In this document: positions 27,150 to 35,756 of the stretch, piece by piece
Numbering within the stretch: the first letter of the stretch is position 1
How the letters are laid out: every line of letters begins with the position of its first letter
Translations under genes and position numbers: made by a program
DNA from: Ophelia neglecta
Lineage: Eukaryota
Direction of reading: 5' to 3'
Assembly: GCA_965285935.1 (NCBI GenBank)
Contig: OZ260664.1
Location: forward strand, 11,594,001-11,658,000
Length of the DNA stretch: 64,000 bases
The notes under the pieces: model-generated
Database searches by the model: none
Seen by the model: only the letters and a program-made list of their open reading frames with translations
What the model was told of the DNA's origin: nothing

Positions 27150-27544
27150 TTTGTCGACTTCTTTCGCCTCTAGCCACATCATTCATCTCCAATTTAACTT
27201 AATTATACAGTGAAACCTGCCTTAAAGACCACCTGTCTAATCAGACCATATATTTTAGGAACAGAACACTGACTTTCCATTGATTTTGACCTGTCTATTC
27301 AAACCACCTGCCTATAAAGACCACAATTTGTCAGTCCTTTGGGTGGTCTTAATACCCAGGTTTCACTGTAATTAAAATAATTGAGTTGACTAGCAAGTGG
27401 GGTGCACAAATAATAAAAACCTGTATTTATTACCGAAATACAATCAAAATCGAAATTACTCCTGATACTATGATAATTATTAATGTTTATCACTGACTAG
27501 CCAAATTCGACTTATCGTCATGGGGAGGCGCCCGATAGGACCCC
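27150..27544 (-). repeat. Split direct repeat B2 (395 bp), 3' terminus of the element
   Basis: TTTGTCGACTTC...GATAGGACCCC, a copy of 29022-29416. Confidence 0.95.
27208..27368. mobile_element. 161-bp Tc1/mariner(pogo)-type MITE inside repeat B2
   Basis: TIR CAGTGAAACCTG...CAGGTTTCACTG with TA on both sides; internal GACCACC subrepeats. Confidence 0.85.
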
Positions 27545-27860
27545 TCTCAGCTGACTTCATTTAAACTTTATATTTTATATCAACGAAAATTACTCCTTGT
27601 TATCACTAGAATCAGATACTGATAGTCTGAACATCATGTAAGAACTTCCTCCTGTTCTACCAATCTTCTCTTCCCCTTCCAATGAGTCACCTGCAACTGA
27701 CTTGATCATCATGTAATTTATAACATCTGGCATAACTTTAAATAAATCCAGCACCCCTCCCTCACTTTTACATATTGTTACTACTATAACCTCCTCTTAT
27801 CTATGACACACTCCTTAAAAAGCCTAATCATCACATCTTACTTTACCCTATAGAGGTACA

Positions 27861-28329
27861 TTCTTGCTCAATATTAACTATACATGGTTCAGCCTCCAGG
27901 CCACACCCTTCAGCCTCACTCCTTATAATGCTTCTAGCTCAAGATTAACTATACATGGTTCAGCCTCCAGGCCACCCAAGAGGTAACACCCTTCAGCCTC
28001 ACCCCTTATAATGCTTCTTGCTCAAGATTAACTGTACATGGTTCAGCCTCCAGGCCACCCAAGAGGTAACACCCTTCAGCCTCACTCCTTATAATGCTTC
28101 TTGCTCAAGATTAACTATACATGGTTCAGCCTCCAGGCCACCCAAGAGGTAACACCCTTCAGCCTCACTCCTTATAATGCTTCTTGCTCAAGATTAACTA
28201 TACATGGTTCAGCCTCCAGGCCACCCAAGAGGTAACACCCTTCAGCCTCACTCCTTATAATGCTTCTTGCTCAAAATCAACTAAACATAGTTCAGCCTTC
28301 CAGGCCACCCAAGAGGTAACACCCTTCAG
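27861..28329. repeat. 83-bp tandem array (about 5.6 units) in the A2-B2 spacer
   Basis: Units start at 27861 (12-bp deletion), 27932, 28015, 28098, 28181 and 28264: TTCTTGCTCAAGATTAACTATACATGGTTCAGCCTCCAGGCCACCCAAGAGGTAACACCCTTCAGCCTCACTCCTTATAATGC. Confidence 0.95.
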
Positions 28330-28730
28330 ACCCTATTTAGGCTAGTACTCCATTTACATTATACTATTGCTCCAATTGCATACTATGCATGCTCATTTAA
28401 GTTTCCAGGTCACTCAACAGTTAAGTCCTGTCTTACTACCCAACTTTCTGGGTCCCATGTTATCACAATCAATCTCAAATGATTCTTCAGATCCCCCAAG
28501 GTGTAACACCCTTCCAATTTTCTTAACCTTACTGGCACCTATGATGTAATATTGCCTAGGCCTTTCTATTTCTACAAAAGTTATCAGTCCAGGCCAAGGG
28601 GGTAATTACCCTTCCAGTCAAACTATGGAGCCCTAGCAGTGCCAATGTGCAGCCTGGCCTTAAAACACCAGACTAACTAATAATTAACACTACTTCTACC
28701 CCTCACCTCATATGGGTGGCTGTGGGTGGG

Positions 28731-29024
28731 AAAGCTGTCTGTCTAGCTTTCCTGCTGCCTGCTAAATCAAAGATGGCTACACGTGCTACGTCCTCGATCA
28801 CCTGATGTGTGCCTGGCGCCCCCTGCCCATATACCATTTACTGTCAAGTCACGTACGCCATACCCAACTAGTCCCAGCAGTAGTATAGCAATAGCCATGG
28901 AAAATAATGCATACTGCTAGCGAAGTAGTATTGCCACAGGCAAAAACATAGTACTCCCTAAATACAAGGAGGCCCGAGTCGAAAGGTGACAAAACATGTT
29001 ATCGCCTTGCGATAAAATATATTT
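28731..29024 (-). repeat. Split direct repeat A2 (294 bp), abutting B1
   Basis: Copy of 35463-35756; shares TTT (29022-29024) with B1. Confidence 0.95.
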
Positions 29025-29416
29025 GTCGACTTCTTTCGCCTCTAGCCACATCATTCATCTCCAATTTAACTTAATTATACAGTGAAACCTGCCTTAAAGA
29101 CCACCTGTCTAATCAGACCATATATTTTAGGAACAGAACACTGACTTTCCATTGATTTTGACCTGTCTATTCAAACCACCTGCCTATAAAGACCACAATT
29201 TTTCAGTCCTTTGGGTGGTCTTAATACCCAGGTTTCACTGTAATTAAAATAATTGAGCTGACTAGCAAGTGGGGTGCACAAATAATAAAAACCTGTATTT
29301 ATTACCGAAATACAATCAAAATCGAAATTACTCCTGATACTATGATAATTATTAATGTTTATCACTGACTAGCCAAATTCGACTTATCGTCATGGGGAGG
29401 CGCCCGATAGGACCCC
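29022..29416 (-). repeat. Split direct repeat B1 (395 bp)
   Basis: Matches 27150-27544 with two substitutions seen (29202/27330 and 29258/27386). Confidence 0.95.
29080..29240. mobile_element. Same 161-bp MITE inside repeat B1
   Basis: Same TIRs and TA flanks as 27208-27368. Confidence 0.85.
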
Positions 29417-29764
29417 CACAAGAGGTCCCACATGAAAGGAGCAGCCAAACTGCAGCCCGAATGTGGGGCCTCGCGCCCCCCATGCGACAGCGATAATATA
29501 AATATCTGAAATCCTGATAGTATTATTCCCCAAATTTGCTAACAGGCATCTCTGTAGCGAATCAAGATAAAGTGGCCTGCCTAAATCTAAGCAGAATGGC
29601 TGTAGACCCCTTCCCGTTTACAGTATCTAATGCTTGGTAACCCATGTTGCACACCCCACTCACCACCGGTATCTGTCTAGTAGTATCTCAGCCCATTATT
29701 ATCTTTGAACCAACCTTAATCACACAATATTTCCCATGTGCCACACTGTGATATTAAATGATGT

Positions 29765-30739
29765 TCACTGATTTATTAAAACATCTGGCCTAATGTAATT
29801 CAAAAAAGCATAGGACTTCCATCTCCCCATAAGCCTGATTTGCTCCTGGGAACTGCCATTCATAGCCATCTGAGTTGCCCTACCTAGCCTAAATGAATGT
29901 GTATTAAAGCAATCTGAGTCCAGTCCTAATTGACAAATGCACCTTTTCAAAACATTGACCACCTGGTTCCTGGAGAGGGCATGTGATTCCAGGTTCTTTT
30001 TAAACAGTGGACCTGCTTCCTCCCCTCTTAACTGCATGTATTGCCCTAAAGCTTGTACTGGGCAATAAGAACCTTTCACTTCTTTCACTTTTATCTTTGG
30101 GGTAAACCCTTGGCTATGCTTATATTTCTCAAAATTAATAATGTAAGCATTGACCCTACCATCAGGCGACCAAGACCAGCTTAATTGTTTCAACTGCAGT
30201 GTATTTGTCTCATTGCCAGCAGTGACAGCTTCCCCAACCCTGAGACAACCATAAAACAAGGTTAGAAAAAGGGCCCTATATAGGACCTGTTCATCCCTGG
30301 GCAACCCTATGTAGCTAAGTTGAGCTAACACCTTTTGTAATAATGTTAAGGTTATTGGCAACAAATGTTTCTGCCCCTGAGCACAACGTTTAACTCCTGC
30401 CATTAGTTTGGCAACCACAAAGGATGAGGTTATATCTGGTAGCCTCCATAACCTATGGTAAAAAGCTATAGCTGACAAATGTGTGGAGATTGTGGCATAT
30501 TTCCTGCCAAGTGTAAACAAATGACAAATAAATGCACTTAACACTGTGACCATATCAGTCTGCTGGTATGGGACCATAGAAGATGTTTGTACGAAATTCA
30601 TATAAGATTGCCAGTGCTTAGCATATTGTCTAAAAGAGGCTTCTTCCATTGAGGCAAGGATCAGTCTGCTCCCCACAGATTGAAGTTTTCGGGCCGAAGA
30701 TGATAAGGCACTGAAGTTGATCGCGGTTGCAATCCCCAA
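29765..30739 (-). CDS. Tyrosine recombinase (YR), open frame intact, overlapping the RNase H end
   Basis: Catalytic signature LRVGE ... KH ... HSFRLGRAT ... GRWKS ... LNYIR. First ATG at 30649; the ORF-track start is TTG. Confidence 0.95.
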   Translation of the reverse strand: MGIATAINFSALSSSARKLQSVGSRLILASMEEASFRQYAKHWQSYMNFVQTSSMVPYQQTDMVTVLSAFICHLFTLGRKYATISTHLSAIAFYHRLWRLPDITSSFVVAKLMAGVKRCAQGQKHLLPITLTLLQKVLAQLSYIGLPRDEQVLYRALFLTLFYGCLRVGEAVTAGNETNTLQLKQLSWSWSPDGRVNAYIINFEKYKHSQGFTPKIKVKEVKGSYCPVQALGQYMQLRGEEAGPLFKKNLESHALSRNQVVNVLKRCICQLGLDSDCFNTHSFRLGRATQMAMNGSSQEQIRLMGRWKSYAFLNYIRPDVLINQ

Positions 30740-32422
30740 GCTTGTAGGTTGTGTGCTGACACCTTCTGTCGAGAAATAAGATCACAAGTTATGTTCTTTG
30801 TACCAGGCAAATGTTCTGCCCTAATAAAGATGTTATGTTTCAATTGTACCAAAACCATTCACCTGATTAATGTCATGATATGTCTAATAGGGGAGGTCTG
30901 TTTATTCAATGCAAACACTACCCCTAAATTGTCACAATGGAAGGTAATGTGGCAGTTTGCCAACTCCTGTGCAAACATATTGAGAAGTACAAAAATTGGA
31001 AACAATTCTAGAATTGCTATGTCTAGCTCTCTCCAGTTGACAGGCCATAGGCCGTGAATCCAATTAGTACCAAATGTGCCTCCATAACCAGATTTAGAGG
31101 AATCAGTATACAGATTGATATTCTGTTGATCAAACATGTCTGCCCATAACATCATTGTTACCCCATTGTACTCTTTGAGGAAGTGTTCCCACATTTCAAG
31201 ATCCATTCTCATAGCCCTGTCCACCTTTACCTTATGCCAAGCAAGTTCTTTTCCCACTAATGGCATTGTACAACCTTCTTAAGAAAGGACGGCCCGGTCT
31301 AACTACTATGGAAGCAAATGCCAGACAACCAATGGCTGACCTTAATTCTCTGCCTGTGACCACCTCTTGTCTTTGAATTTGTGCTATTTTCTCCCTGTAT
31401 GCCTTTATCTTGTCTACTGGCAGCCTAGTTATCATTTGTACTGAATCAAGTTCTAACCCAAGGGAAACCATTACCAGTGCAGGCCCTACAGTTTTCTCCT
31501 CTGCTATGGGGACACCTACCTCCATACACAATGCTTTGAAATCCTGCAGATATTTATGACAAATGTTGTATTCCTTATTGAGAAACATGAAATCATCCAA
31601 AACCTTCACCACAAATTCCACCCCGAATTGAGTTCTCATAATCCATTTCAAGGCATCCGAAAATGCCTCAAAAATTTTACACGAAGCTGAACACCCCATT
31701 TGTAAACAGCGATCATAATAATATAAATTCTTCCAGGTGAACCCAAAAAGATGATACTGTGAGGGGTGCACCGGAATGATGCGAAAAGCATGTGCTAAAT
31801 CTGTTTTAGCCATAAAAACACGAGGCCCTTGCCCTCTTATTATTTTGATGGCATCCTCAATGCTTTGATACTTTACTGTGGCTGACTCCCTGGGGATGTT
31901 AGTATTAACTGCTGCTTCATTGTAAGGGTATGAAAGATTGTGCAGCAATCTATACTGCCCTGGAGTGGACTTCTCCCTAATGGCAAGAGGTGTGCATTTA
32001 AAATTGTCTAGTGGTGGTTTATTAAAGGGGCCCGCTATTCTTCCAGCCTGCAGCTCTTTGGACAAATTTGCCTCCACTGCCTCTGGGTTCATCAGAGCAG
32101 ATCTAGCATTATTACACGACAGAGACGTATCTTCCCCTACAAATGGGATCTTAAAGCCCTCCGAAAACCCTTTCACTAACGGATCCCTGAGCCTGGCAGG
32201 GTATTTGCTTAAGTACTTAACTAAGTTGTTAATGTTTACTGGGGTTGTCAGTTTTGTAGCCGGGGCACTCGCAGTCTCTGTGCTTCCCTGAACATATGTA
32301 GCAGTCATGTCTCCAGCGGCACTTTGGGTCATTGCACTTTCCTTGGAGGTGATAGGCCCTGCAGAAACCATATGGCGGTACCTGTATACTGGCTGCCTCC
32401 CCCTGATCTTGTCCCCTTTCAA
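30661..32422 (-). pseudogene. pol (reverse transcriptase + RNase H), disrupted
   Basis: RT motifs KTDLAHAFRIIP, CLQMGCSASCKIF, VLDDF, LGLELDS. Frameshift near 31250. RNase H motifs LYTDSS, ILELFPI, HCDN, HLPG-N-CDLISR. In-frame TGA at 30859-30861. Confidence 0.9.
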
Positions 32423-33457
32423 AGCTGCTTTTGGGACGAAAACTATTAGCTCCCCTGCTACAGTTTGCCCTCAATGATAACTTAAATGACAGGTCTGGTC
32501 TGGTATGATCCCAGGGATACCACACGGTAGCTCTACCAGCCCTGAACTCCCCGTCATACCATGCCTAATCTGCTCCCCACTCTGCCAATTCCCGTACCTT
32601 GTTAGCGTGAACCAGCAATGCTTTACATTCCAGTGGAAATTTCTCACTGTATATCTGGGAAAATATGTCAAATGCCCTGCTCCATTGTAAAATATTCAAG
32701 TCTTTAAATTGCTTTCTCTGTAGCTTCAACCTAGGCTCGTCCCCATCTAAATCAATCCTCAGGGCCCCCTTTTTCCAATCTGCTTCTTTATGCTGCCCCA
32801 ATAAATCTCCCAATTCTACAAATTGGTGTTGCCAAATTTTTTGTTTTAACTTCATAGGTACACTAGCCCCTAGTGGAATGTCGTATAAATCTTTAGCTTG
32901 ATTGTCACATGAAGCTATAGCTGGACTATCGTACGGAGCTCTAGCTGACCTCTGAGGAACTACCTGTATCTGCTCTCCTTTGTGCTGTGTAAAATTTACC
33001 TCCTGTTCAGAGAACATGGATGTACAAATCTCAGCATTAGAGCCACCTATGGTAGCTGTGTCAAATGGCTTCTCCCCTAGTATATCTGGGCCCCCTGGGG
33101 TTGTATTACCTGAACCCTGCTTCTGTTGACTGGTTCCTGTGGTGACCTTTGTGGTATTCTCTGTATTGTTATTGACTGGTATGTGTCTATAATTGTTGTC
33201 CCTGAAGTGCTGGCTGCACCACTGAGAATCACTGATGTCAATAATTCCAGTTTCTTTTCTAGTCCTGACATCCTTTCCTCCATCCCGGAATTAGGAAGCT
33301 CTACTTCGTGTCCCACCCTATTCTGTTTTTCTCCTATATTGCCACTTGCCTCCCCCTCACCCCTTTTTCTTGTTAGTCTCCCTTGCGCTTTGCTTTTCTC
33401 AGGAAGTACTGGAACTTGATCCATGTTATCCCTTGCCCGTTTCTTTCCCCTAGGCAT
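32229..33457 (-). pseudogene. gag-like ORF1, disrupted
   Basis: ATG at 33457 (MPRGKKRARD). One frameshift lies between about 33290 and 33080, joining the 32565-33017 frame. An in-frame TAG at 32565-32567 falls in D*AWYDGEFR (the W-x-x-YD-x-x-FR motif of DIRS/Ngaro gag). C-terminal Cys/His knuckle CRAYHLQGKCNDPKCRWRHDCYICSGKH. Confidence 0.85.
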
Positions 33458-33543
33458 GATGTCCTCTGAAAAATATTTCTGCCAAAAAAACACAAATTAA
33501 ACTCGCAACATTGTAAACTGTTCCCTTTATATAATTCAAATTA

Positions 33544-33710
33544 CAGTGAAACTTGTATATTAATACTTTCCAAGGAACTGTCAAATGATGGTTTATATGG
33601 GCAGGTGGTCAGAAAACCAATGGAAAGATTGGTATTCTGCTTCTAAAAGGGGTGTTCTGATTTTACCAGTGTTTTGTTTCGAGAGGTGGTCTTCCAGACA
33701 AGTTTCACTG
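33544..33710. mobile_element. 167-bp diverged MITE of the same family, opposite orientation, upstream of gag
   Basis: TIR CAGTGAAACTTGT...ACAAGTTTCACTG with TA flanks; the reverse complement aligns with the B-repeat MITE (AAGACCACCT, CTTTCCATTG, ACCACCTGCC). Confidence 0.8.
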
Positions 33711-33793
33711 TATTAATTTGGCAAGCAGTTCTATTGTTTCCCACAGTTTTGGACGCAGCGAACAAGCAAAGCGACGCCAACAAAAGGTACATT

Positions 33794-34060
33794 TAGCCAC
33801 TTACAATGCCGGCCGCAGCGAGCCTCTTCACACGGTACTATAGCCACTTACGGTGAAGCCGCGCGAACCGCCTCTACCTGGTTCTATAGCCACTTACAGT
33901 AAAGGCCGCGCGAACCGCCATTACCCGGTTCTATAGCTACTTACAGTAAAGGCCGCGCGAACCGCCTAATACCTGTTCTATAGCCACTTACAGTATAGGC
34001 CGCGCGAACTGCCCAATACCTGGTTCTATAGCCACTTACAGTAAAGGGCCGCGCGAACTC
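33794..34060. repeat. 46-48-bp tandem array (about 5.7 units) between the SGNH ORF and gag
   Basis: Units start at 33794, 33841, 33887, 33934, 33981 and 34029: TAGCCACTTACAGTAAAGGCCGCGCGAACCGCC...GTTCTA. Confidence 0.92.
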
Positions 34061-34690
34061 CAAACCGCATTAGAAACAACCGAAGCCACTAGATTTTTGC
34101 CTTTCATTAGTCGAAACTTGTATTTAATGGCACAAATTATTATGCCACCCTGAGTATTTTCCCCCGAGAGACATTAACAGCACCTTAAAATCAAGCATAT
34201 AACGTAGTCTTGAAACTCATCAACTCCAAAATTCATTTGGACCTCCCATACCGTGCACCAGAAAACTACACCCTGCCTAATCCCTCTATGTACTATAATT
34301 TTCTGCCCACATGCATGCATGTATTTGTCAGTCCTGGCCACCCAAGGGGTAACACCAGCTAACCCTGTCTAACCTATCCACATAACCCCCTGTGCTATTA
34401 CATTTGTTTATGTGCATGTAAGGGGTGGGGGGGGGGGGGCATCTATCGCTGTTTTTGTGCAGCAGGCTTACTACTAATATGAAAAGAATGTCTCTGTTTC
34501 CTTCATTTTAGGTTATAATTATCTATTACATAAATATTACATAAAATTGCTTATTTCGAAAAGTCGATATTCAACCATGTATATCATGCACAAATCAACA
34601 AATTTGGAATGGCGATATTTTGATATGTAGTATATCAATGACCCTCCTACCGTCCCCCTCCTCCACCCCTAGCCCTACATATATCTGTCC

Positions 34691-35371
34691 CTAATCCCTA
34701 CTTGACTGTGCTTTCCCGATCAGTTTAAAACTTGCCCTTCTAATTGATCGTACATAGCTTTCCCTTCCCTCTTTCTTGTTTGGGTGGATCCCATCCCAAG
34801 ACCATTGTTCCACATCCATGGTTTTGCCCTTGTTATTCTCCCAAAACCCCTCGTGTGTCCAATACATAATCTTGTCATTATCCTCTGCCATTGTTCTTAA
34901 TATTCTATTAAAATGCCCCACCTTTTCCCTAAACTGCTGTGCTGACATAGCTCCTAGGCCCCCCTCCCTCCACAAACAACTGCAGACCATGGCCTGGCTA
35001 GCGCCCTCCTCCAGGCACCATTCGGCCAGCCCTATCACTGCCCCTGCCGCCTGCAATGGCGATATGCTAAGTGAAGTGAGGTCATTTGTCCCAATATCTA
35101 ACAAAATAATGCACCCTTTTTGCAACCCCCTCGCGATTACCCTGCGCGCATGTATGCCAAAATGTCCAACAACCTTTAGACCCGGCTGGGCGGCAAAAGT
35201 AAGGCGATCCAATTTTCCAGACATTCTCAAATGGTCTATCACCCCACCATTGTCTCCCCCAGTGCCTATGACCTTGTCTGCTGGGGACTGGAACTTGCCT
35301 ATTCTACCCCATATGTGTTGTTCCATCCCGGTTATGAAACTGTGCCCACCGATAACTAAATGTTCCTTCAT
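34691..35371 (-). CDS. SGNH/GDSL-type hydrolase (esterase), 226 aa, intact, retrotransposon-encoded
   Basis: Block I VIGGHSF (nucleophile Ser), block III LDIGTNDL, block V WDGIHPN (DxxH). ATG start with no interruptions. Confidence 0.9.
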   Translation of the reverse strand: MKEHLVIGGHSFITGMEQHIWGRIGKFQSPADKVIGTGGDNGGVIDHLRMSGKLDRLTFAAQPGLKVVGHFGIHARRVIARGLQKGCIILLDIGTNDLTSLSISPLQAAGAVIGLAEWCLEEGASQAMVCSCLWREGGLGAMSAQQFREKVGHFNRILRTMAEDNDKIMYWTHEGFWENNKGKTMDVEQWSWDGIHPNKKEGRESYVRSIRRASFKLIGKAQSSRD

Positions 35372-35462
35372 GTTAAGGTAGCGTATCTTGGCTATATAAT
35401 CACCCTTTAGGAACTATAAAACCGCCTTTACCTTGTAGTTATTGCTTCAAACCCCGTGAACT

Positions 35463-35756
35463 AAAGCTGTCTGTCTAGCTTTCCTGCTGCCTGCTAAATC
35501 AAAGATGGCTACACGTGCTACGTCCTCGATCACCTGATGTGTGCCTGGCGCCCCCTGCCCATATACCATTTACTGTCAAGTCACGTACGCCATACCCAAC
35601 TAGTCCCAGCAGTAGTATAGCAATAGCCATGGAAAATAATGCATACTGCTAGCGAAGTAGTATTGCCACAGGCAAAAACATAGTACTCCCTAAATACAAG
35701 GAGGCCCGAGTCGAAAGGTGACAAAACATGTTATCGCCTTGCGATAAAATATATTT
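35463..35756 (-). repeat. Split direct repeat A1 (294 bp), 5' terminus of the element
   Basis: Identical by eye to 28731-29024 (AAAGCTGTCTGTCTAGC...GCGATAAAATATATTT). Confidence 0.95.
35500..35590 (-). promoter_or_regulatory. Candidate Pol II promoter within repeat A (duplicated in A2)
   Basis: Minus-strand TATA-like GTATATGG (35566) about 28 nt before Inr-like TCAG (35537); E-box CACGTG 35512-35517; YY1-like AAGATGGC 35502-35509. Motif inspection only. Confidence 0.4.

Follow-up and report, generated by a model that had tools for sequence, protein, structure and literature searches.

A Ngaro-like retrotransposon with an esterase ORF upstream of gag

The DNA analysed here, referred to as the window, is a stretch of 64,000 nt from Ophelia neglecta (contig OZ260664.1, positions 11,594,001 to 11,658,000 of assembly GCA_965285935.1); positions in it carry the prefix w. 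It contains a tyrosine recombinase (YR) retrotransposon that is read on the minus strand from w35756 to w27150, a recently inserted, now defective copy with split direct repeats of the Ngaro type. On the element strand the order of parts is A1, an SGNH hydrolase open reading frame (ORF), a non-coding segment, gag, reverse transcriptase/RNase H (RT/RH), YR, B1A2, a spacer and B2, and all the long ORFs lie on the minus strand. An earlier reading of the same letters, here called the original prediction, had proposed these coordinates and this order, and both were confirmed by repeat finding, self-alignment and ORF and domain matches.

The terminal repeat A1 at the 5' end of the element (294 bp, w35463-35756) is 100% identical to the internal repeat A2 (294 bp, w28731-29024), and the terminal repeat B2 at the 3' end (w27150-27544) matches the internal repeat B1 (w29022-29416) at 99%. 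All four repeats are on the minus strand, and the B repeat measures 395 bp by self-alignment, where an ungapped scan shows 300 bp only. A2 adjoins B1, the two sharing 3 nt that read AAA on the element strand, and this place is presumed to be the circle junction. In independent copies with the 5' end present the alignment starts at element base 1-3 and the flanks are unrelated, which defines the 5' limit of the element; copies that reach B2 define the 3' limit. The end and junction triplets are found at w35754-35756, w29022-29024 and w27150-27152, and the 5' ends of copies read AAA or ATA, followed by TATATTTT. AAA at the B1/A2 junction and AAA or ATA at the copy ends are what a crossover core of 3 nt would leave, and agree less well with a target-site duplication. 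Between A2 and B2 lies a non-coding spacer of 1.19 kb (w27545-28730, minus strand) with an 83-bp tandem array at about w27805-28329. This spacer is ~772 bp shorter in the window copy than in most copies, and the missing DNA is non-coding and array-related.

The first ORF after A1 encodes an intact SGNH/GDSL esterase of 226 amino acids (aa) upstream of gag (w35371-34691, minus strand; Pfam Lipase_GDSL, E 2e-5), as had been predicted. From its stop codon to the gag ATG extends a non-coding segment of 1,233 nt without ORFs (w33458-34690, minus strand), which contains a dispersed repeat, a tandem array and a miniature inverted-repeat transposable element (MITE). The gag ORF (w32229-33457, minus strand; ATG at w33457; 410 aa where open) ends in a CCHC/CCCH-like zinc finger. 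It is overlapped by the RT/RH ORF (w30661-32422, minus strand; 570-603 aa where open), which also overlaps YR and has an RVT_1 match. The RT/RH profile aligns through the RT and RNase H of caulimovirus and foamy-virus enzymes; used as a single-sequence query against solved structures, the RNase H region gave no match, whereas the profile search did. The YR ORF (w30739-29765, minus strand) is intact and 100% identical in several copies, and its Phage_integrase match lies under the Pfam curated cut-off (E 4e-4, 20.6 bits vs 27.1). The defects of the window copy escaped the original prediction. The gag frame is shifted near w33184 and meets an in-frame stop at w32565-32567, the RT/RH frame is shifted near w31243 and meets an in-frame stop at w30859-30861, and the SGNH and YR frames are intact.

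By the structure-based definition of PMC4157794 alone, the element is Ngaro-like. RT/RH and the tyrosine recombinase are on the same strand with YR downstream, the direct repeats are split as A1...B1A2...B2 with the internal pair downstream of YR, and there is no methyltransferase domain, a Pfam scan of the RT/RH ORF returning RVT_1 only. There is also no room for a methyltransferase, because the RT/RH profile aligns to RT and RNase H up to position 568 of 599. The split repeats and the YR thus support the original assignment to Ngaro-like YR retrotransposons.

The catalytic blocks of the esterase are GHSF (Ser11), G64, GTND (N96) and DGIH (D193, H196). In an alignment of 42 SGNH homologues G64, N96, R135, D193 and H196 are invariant and G9-H10-S11-F12 nearly so. 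The ORF therefore has the block I Ser, block II Gly, block III GxND and block V DxxH of the SGNH/GDSL hydrolases, with block I assigned by position only. Block I is GHS in the elements described here, vs GDS in the ORF1 esterase of CR1/L2-type long interspersed nuclear elements (LINEs). The profile of the SGNH family matches solved GDSL-like hydrolases, the PAF acetylhydrolase Ib subunits and the zebrafish LINE ORF1 esterase 4c1b, and these matches and the Pfam match cover blocks II-V.

All genomic copies keep the esterase ORF

Whole-assembly searches with the SGNH segment, gag and YR each returned the same 13 places, where copies are found at 98-100% identity, and no SGNH-less copy was found among them. 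Sequences were retrieved for 12 of the 13. The window copy and the copies L002 and L003 have identical flanks on both sides; L003 lies 152 kb upstream on the same chromosome and L002 on a small 825-kb contig. These three are a single insertion, later duplicated (a segmental duplication) or represented by haplotigs, and the family therefore amounts to ~11 independent insertions. The three differ in their lesions, with gag open in L003, interrupted by a stop in L002 and, in the window copy, by a stop as well as a frameshift. In some copies none of the four frames is interrupted, and the lengths are then 226 aa for SGNH, 410 aa for gag, 570-603 aa for RT/RH and ~294-338 aa for YR.

Four copies at different loci (L004, L005, L007, L008) share the same internal deletion of 2,056 bp, which runs from early gag to late RT/RH and keeps the SGNH and YR ORFs. 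The presence of one deletion at four loci indicates a defective derivative mobilised in trans. The deletion was also considered as a splice product, and this was ruled out by its bounds, which are a TAA microhomology and not GT-AG. One further copy has a 2.9-kb deletion, and two (L009, L010) are without the 171-bp MITE. Contigs of public DNA runs (three runs, one sample) contain the same element junctions and a deletion joint of 2,059 bp.

The unusual position of SGNH, and nothing more, would favour readings in which the segment is a chimera made in assembly, a host gene captured once or a nested element of unrelated origin. The original prediction had allowed that other copies might lack the 34100-35460 segment and had asked whether the 5' placement is conserved; the segment is present, between A1 and gag, in 13 of 13 copies. 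Because all 13 keep the 5' SGNH ORF, an assembly chimera or a one-off capture is excluded. Further evidence against such an origin is provided by the junctions in contigs built from unassembled reads of the public runs, by the same order of genes in diverged families and other organisms, and by the purifying selection on the SGNH ORF (both below). We give this explanation practically no weight.

Diverged families and other organisms share the 5' position of the esterase

Six-frame genome searches with both proteins revealed many diverged SGNH/YR pairs on a common strand, with SGNH upstream by 3.5-4.5 kb, and twelve of these places were retrieved for study. The order SGNH, gag, RT/RH, YR is found in all of the ~seven diverged families sampled (L018-L025). 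Their RT/RH is 38-48% identical to that of the window family (45-48% for L018-L023, which are 62-65% identical among themselves). In L018-L023, the six examined for repeats, A1 lies just 5' of SGNH and B1A2...B2 after YR, and the repeats are 98-100% identical; L024 and L025 have the same gene order. Outside the Ophelia neglecta genome, the order recurs in two sets of marine metagenome contigs (L013/L014 and L017) and in contig L030 of the annelid Lamellibrachia satsuma, and the gene list around P0172 shows it as well. The 5' esterase is thus a conserved character of a broad clade with the order A1, SGNH, spacer, gag, RT/RNase H, YR, B1A2, B2. The classical architecture with the hydrolase after YR was found in none of the copies and related families examined, all of which have SGNH between A1 and gag.

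The SGNH ORF is under strong purifying selection. The ratio of nonsynonymous to synonymous substitution rates between families is 0.08 (L020/L021), 0.085 (L022/L023) and 0.19 (L018/L029), and the ORF has therefore been kept by selection within elements. An exhaustive HMMER search found 266 SGNH relatives, mostly free-standing ORFs of ~200-220 aa, where a word-based protein search found none. The Atlas clusters of SGNH look-alikes are eukaryotic, with molluscan or cnidarian ones the most frequent. A tree of the SGNH proteins made by a quick method has no resolved backbone, so that a single origin of the 5' position is neither proven nor rejected by it.

The clade also includes shortened elements. 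In a sister family, two non-autonomous derivatives (L026:4463-6547 and L027:4172-6246) consist of A1, the SGNH ORF and B1A2...B2 only and have two different internal deletions. Four relatives of the L019 family at ~90% identity (C1:115634276-115640664, C7:60936603-60943096, C2:66977469-66983822 and C8:32041351-32044323) have a truncated SGNH ORF and a spacer array grown to ~2 kb; they look like satellite-bearing non-autonomous elements. A hydrothermal-vent metagenome contig of 7,160 bp (L016) carries an SGNH ORF of the GHSY type, and its ends repeat (157 nt). Its neighbouring ORFs gave no match to gag, RT/RH or YR of the 5'-SGNH clade, and the contig may represent an element of another kind, or one that is circular or in tandem.

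Several public gene models (P0043, P0047, P0163-P0167) join the esterase to other exons and treat it as a host gene, as in KAI0242052.1 of Lamellibrachia satsuma and the 'obscurin-like' isoforms of Haliotis. For annotation this means that 5'-SGNH elements are mis-modelled as host genes.

Relation to elements with the esterase after YR

The hydrolase of Ngaro elements has been placed after YR (PMC9210276, PMC7192593, PMC6681497), and the position downstream of YR given in the original prediction for described elements is borne out (PMC9210276). In the accessible literature on Ngaro and other YR retrotransposons, a scope that does not include Repbase and Dfam, a 5' position is not mentioned and no Ngaro family already described with a 5' SGNH was found. 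Repbase and Dfam probably hold consensus sequences of the 5'-SGNH clade, unannotated.

Among the SGNH relatives we found one lineage with the order gag, RT, YR, SGNH (L031-L033, L034/L035 and L036; proteins P0132, P0303 and P0081). Here SGNH begins 40-115 nt after YR and has the same GHSF block, and YR has an ALOG-type N-terminal domain; the contigs captured no terminal repeats. P0013 was considered as a further case and dropped, since its upstream ORFs are without RT or YR matches and a gag-sized ORF follows it; it is counted neither way. The lineage is thus like the 5' clade in its GHSF-type SGNH family and its YR retroelement backbone, and unlike it in the position of SGNH and the ALOG-type domain.

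According to the original prediction, the 5' position marks a circularly permuted lineage. A classical Ngaro with the order gag-RT/RH-YR-SGNH-B1A2-B2 would, within one lineage, have had its B/A junction moved from after SGNH to before SGNH. Such a shift is compatible with the order in the circle (YR, junction, SGNH, gag), which leaves SGNH after YR, and with a GHSF-type SGNH family common to both element types. The identities between the two types argue against it. L031-L036 and the 5' clade are 20-26% identical in RT/RH and about 25-29% in YR, over parts only, whereas SGNH, compared along the full length, is 27-38% identical, a closeness like that seen within the 5' clade (29-52%). The polymerase is therefore more diverged between the two element types than the esterase, a discordance that favours module exchange or separate acquisition over a shift of the B/A junction in one lineage, with the caveats that one SGNH-after-YR lineage was sampled and that a floor on enzyme identity could mimic the discordance. 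From these sequence comparisons an origin by module exchange appears more likely than circular permutation, and we regard a simple permutation as rather unlikely.

Putative splice signals bracket the esterase ORF

A putative 5' splice donor, AAG/GTAAAG (the slash marks the splice position), is located at w35430-35431 on the minus strand, between A1 (31 nt away) and the SGNH ATG (61 nt away). Putative 3' splice acceptors lie at w33466-33480 on the same strand, one being a polypyrimidine tract with a CAG whose last base is w33479, 22 nt from the gag ATG, and the other a further CAG that ends at w33466, 9 nt from this ATG. Similar signals are found in the diverged families, with a consensus donor at the corresponding place in nine further elements. 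Of 10 elements scored for a donor, 8 (L018, L019, L020, L021, L022, L023, L017 and L030) have xG/GTACG or xG/GTATG at 4-38 nt ahead of the SGNH ATG, where the motif density of each locus itself predicts 0.01-0.05 per 70 nt. The same donor is present in L025 and in further copies of the L019 family (L026-L028). Likewise, a polypyrimidine-CAG lies 3-13 nt before the gag ATG in L018, L019, L020, L022, L023, L025 and L013 (six lineages), which amounts to 6 of 7 elements scored, plus L025, against an expected 0.02-0.05 per 16 nt. The gag proteins at these acceptors start with MPK, MPR or MGK.

The sequence around the donor and acceptor motifs cannot be aligned between families, and what is conserved among these diverged relatives is the position of a GT donor and a polypyrimidine-AG acceptor. 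The implied introns of 1.09-1.97 kb span the whole SGNH ORF and the spacer arrays. Because the signals bracket both, the SGNH ORF and spacer are probably a conserved intron and the esterase ORF is probably intron-borne. The original prediction had made the esterase the promoter-proximal cistron. It is indeed the first ORF after A1; the bracketing splice signals, conserved as they are, make a plain first cistron a less fitting description.

We therefore consider it moderately probable, as the best explanation of the locus, that the window contains a defective YR retrotransposon of a widespread 5'-SGNH clade in which the esterase ORF and spacer form an intron of 1.1-2.0 kb and expression proceeds through two RNAs. 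In this model, the full-length unspliced RNA would both be the template of reverse transcription and act as the mRNA of the esterase, the latter because the esterase ATG is the first ATG after the donor. Splicing from the donor just 5' of the esterase ATG to the acceptor just 5' of the gag ATG would yield the mRNA for gag, RT/RH and YR. Exon-by-exon genome searches for three families found no intron-less retro-copies, which suggests that reverse transcription uses the unspliced RNA alone; signals in cis within the intron might account for this. The esterase itself may act as an accessory deacylase on a lipid or glycan substrate in the cycle of the element; the analogy is with CR1/L2-type LINEs, whose ORF1 esterase binds lipids.

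Several points weigh against this two-RNA model. The donor and acceptors of the window family fit the consensus less well than those of other families, and L013 is without a clear donor. Motifs for splicing are short, and families that are related do not count as independent samples. The element was found in no RNA run searched. The DNA-run contigs show no splice-type joint, only the deletion joint, although DNA contigs are uninformative on splicing. That the esterase ATG is the first one encountered is an assumption on where transcription starts. As for the enzyme, block I of SGNH (GHS, not GDS) did not align to solved structures in the profile search.

A different expression strategy would be one polycistronic RNA that is not spliced and has the esterase as no more than its promoter-proximal cistron. 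Expression of gag-pol would then depend on reinitiation or internal entry, or on a second promoter located in the spacer with the arrays. The order of the ORFs is as such an RNA would have it, arrays recur in the SGNH-gag spacer of several families, as promoter monomers would, and no spliced joint was seen in the DNA-run contigs. This strategy offers no account, however, of a donor and an acceptor whose position is conserved right at both start codons across families that are otherwise unalignable. A transcript started in the spacer would furthermore lose the esterase, yet every copy keeps it. On this evidence we consider a polycistronic RNA unlikely.

Division of ORFs between spliced and unspliced RNAs is known from the env mRNA of retroviruses, the gag mRNA of Drosophila copia and the intron of the legume Ogre elements. 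The model of two RNAs from the 5'-SGNH elements would resemble these systems in that the unspliced RNA is the genome and splicing picks the ORF that is translated. It would differ from retroviruses in being their reverse, in that translation of the accessory gene would use the unspliced RNA and translation of gag-pol the spliced RNA. To our knowledge, a strategy of this kind has not been reported for YR retrotransposons. Its extension to the whole clade is held more tentatively, at slightly less than even confidence: the esterase, catalytically intact and encoded within a conserved 5' intron, would be made only from unspliced RNA and gag-pol-YR from spliced RNA, a mirror of retroviral splicing, only intron-containing RNA would be reverse-transcribed, and the esterase module would have been exchanged between lineages ~20% identical in RT. 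Expression of the several ORFs of YR retrotransposons is little understood, and a selected esterase at a fixed 5' position, together with the splice signals that bracket it, leads to a testable model of two RNAs from one promoter.

In the SGNH-after-YR lineage, a polypyrimidine-CAG motif resembling an acceptor occurs ~30 nt before the SGNH ATG (L031:5340-5395), and the esterase of that lineage might, to judge by this motif, also be expressed through splicing.

Comparison with known hydrolase-bearing and permuted elements

Vertebrate Ngaro elements with a hydrolase ORF, such as DIRS-53_XT and DIRS-54_XT of Xenopus, have it after YR in a frame that overlaps the neighbouring ORFs (Goodwin and Poulter 2004, as cited in PMC9210276). 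The element in the window is like them in its A1...B1A2B2 repeats, in having gag, RT/RH and YR on one strand, in the absence of a methyltransferase and in an extra SGNH hydrolase ORF. It is unlike them in that SGNH lies between A1 and gag, followed by 0.5-2.3 kb of non-coding DNA before gag and surrounded by putative splice signals. Since their description, the hydrolase ORFs of Ngaro elements have had no proven function (PMC9210276).

PAT and Kangaroo also have split direct repeats, and the order of their ORFs and repeats can be permuted by a 'translocation of the internal repeats' (PMC4157794). These elements, of the DIRS order, differ from the present one in having a methyltransferase and no SGNH, and their permutation concerns gag or YR.

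An SGNH esterase in the first ORF is also found in CR1/L2-type LINEs, and the profile matches the ORF1 protein of zebrafish ZfL2-1 (ZfL2-1 ORF1p, PDB 4c1b) with E 1.4e-4. Unlike the present element, these LINEs are retrotransposons without long terminal repeats, and their esterase is a domain of an RNA-binding ORF1 protein, whereas here it is a free-standing ORF. The esterase is thus a mobile module common to very different YR elements and, more distantly, to LINEs, and its sharing points to a common need for a deacylase in retrotransposition.

The SGNH-gag spacer and its insertions

The long structured spacer and the arrays of the original prediction are present; part of the SGNH-gag spacer, however, is nested junk, namely the MITE and the dispersed repeat. 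The MITE (w33542-33712) is a Tc1-like element of 171 bp with TACAGTGAAAC terminal inverted repeats. The dispersed repeat of ~200 bp (about w34442-34651) matches many places in the genome at ~70%. The B repeat also contains, at about w29077-29253 and w27205-27381, an inverted and diverged member of the MITE family, 75-80% similar, so that a MITE has been incorporated into the terminal repeat.

Several families have tandem arrays in the spacer between SGNH and gag, with unit sequences that are unrelated, and so has the annelid element (L030:1261-1725). The array of the window copy has units of 47 bp (w33786-34059), each of which contains GTAAGT, the consensus of a 5' splice site, within the putative intron. 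These units could be decoy or U1-binding sites.

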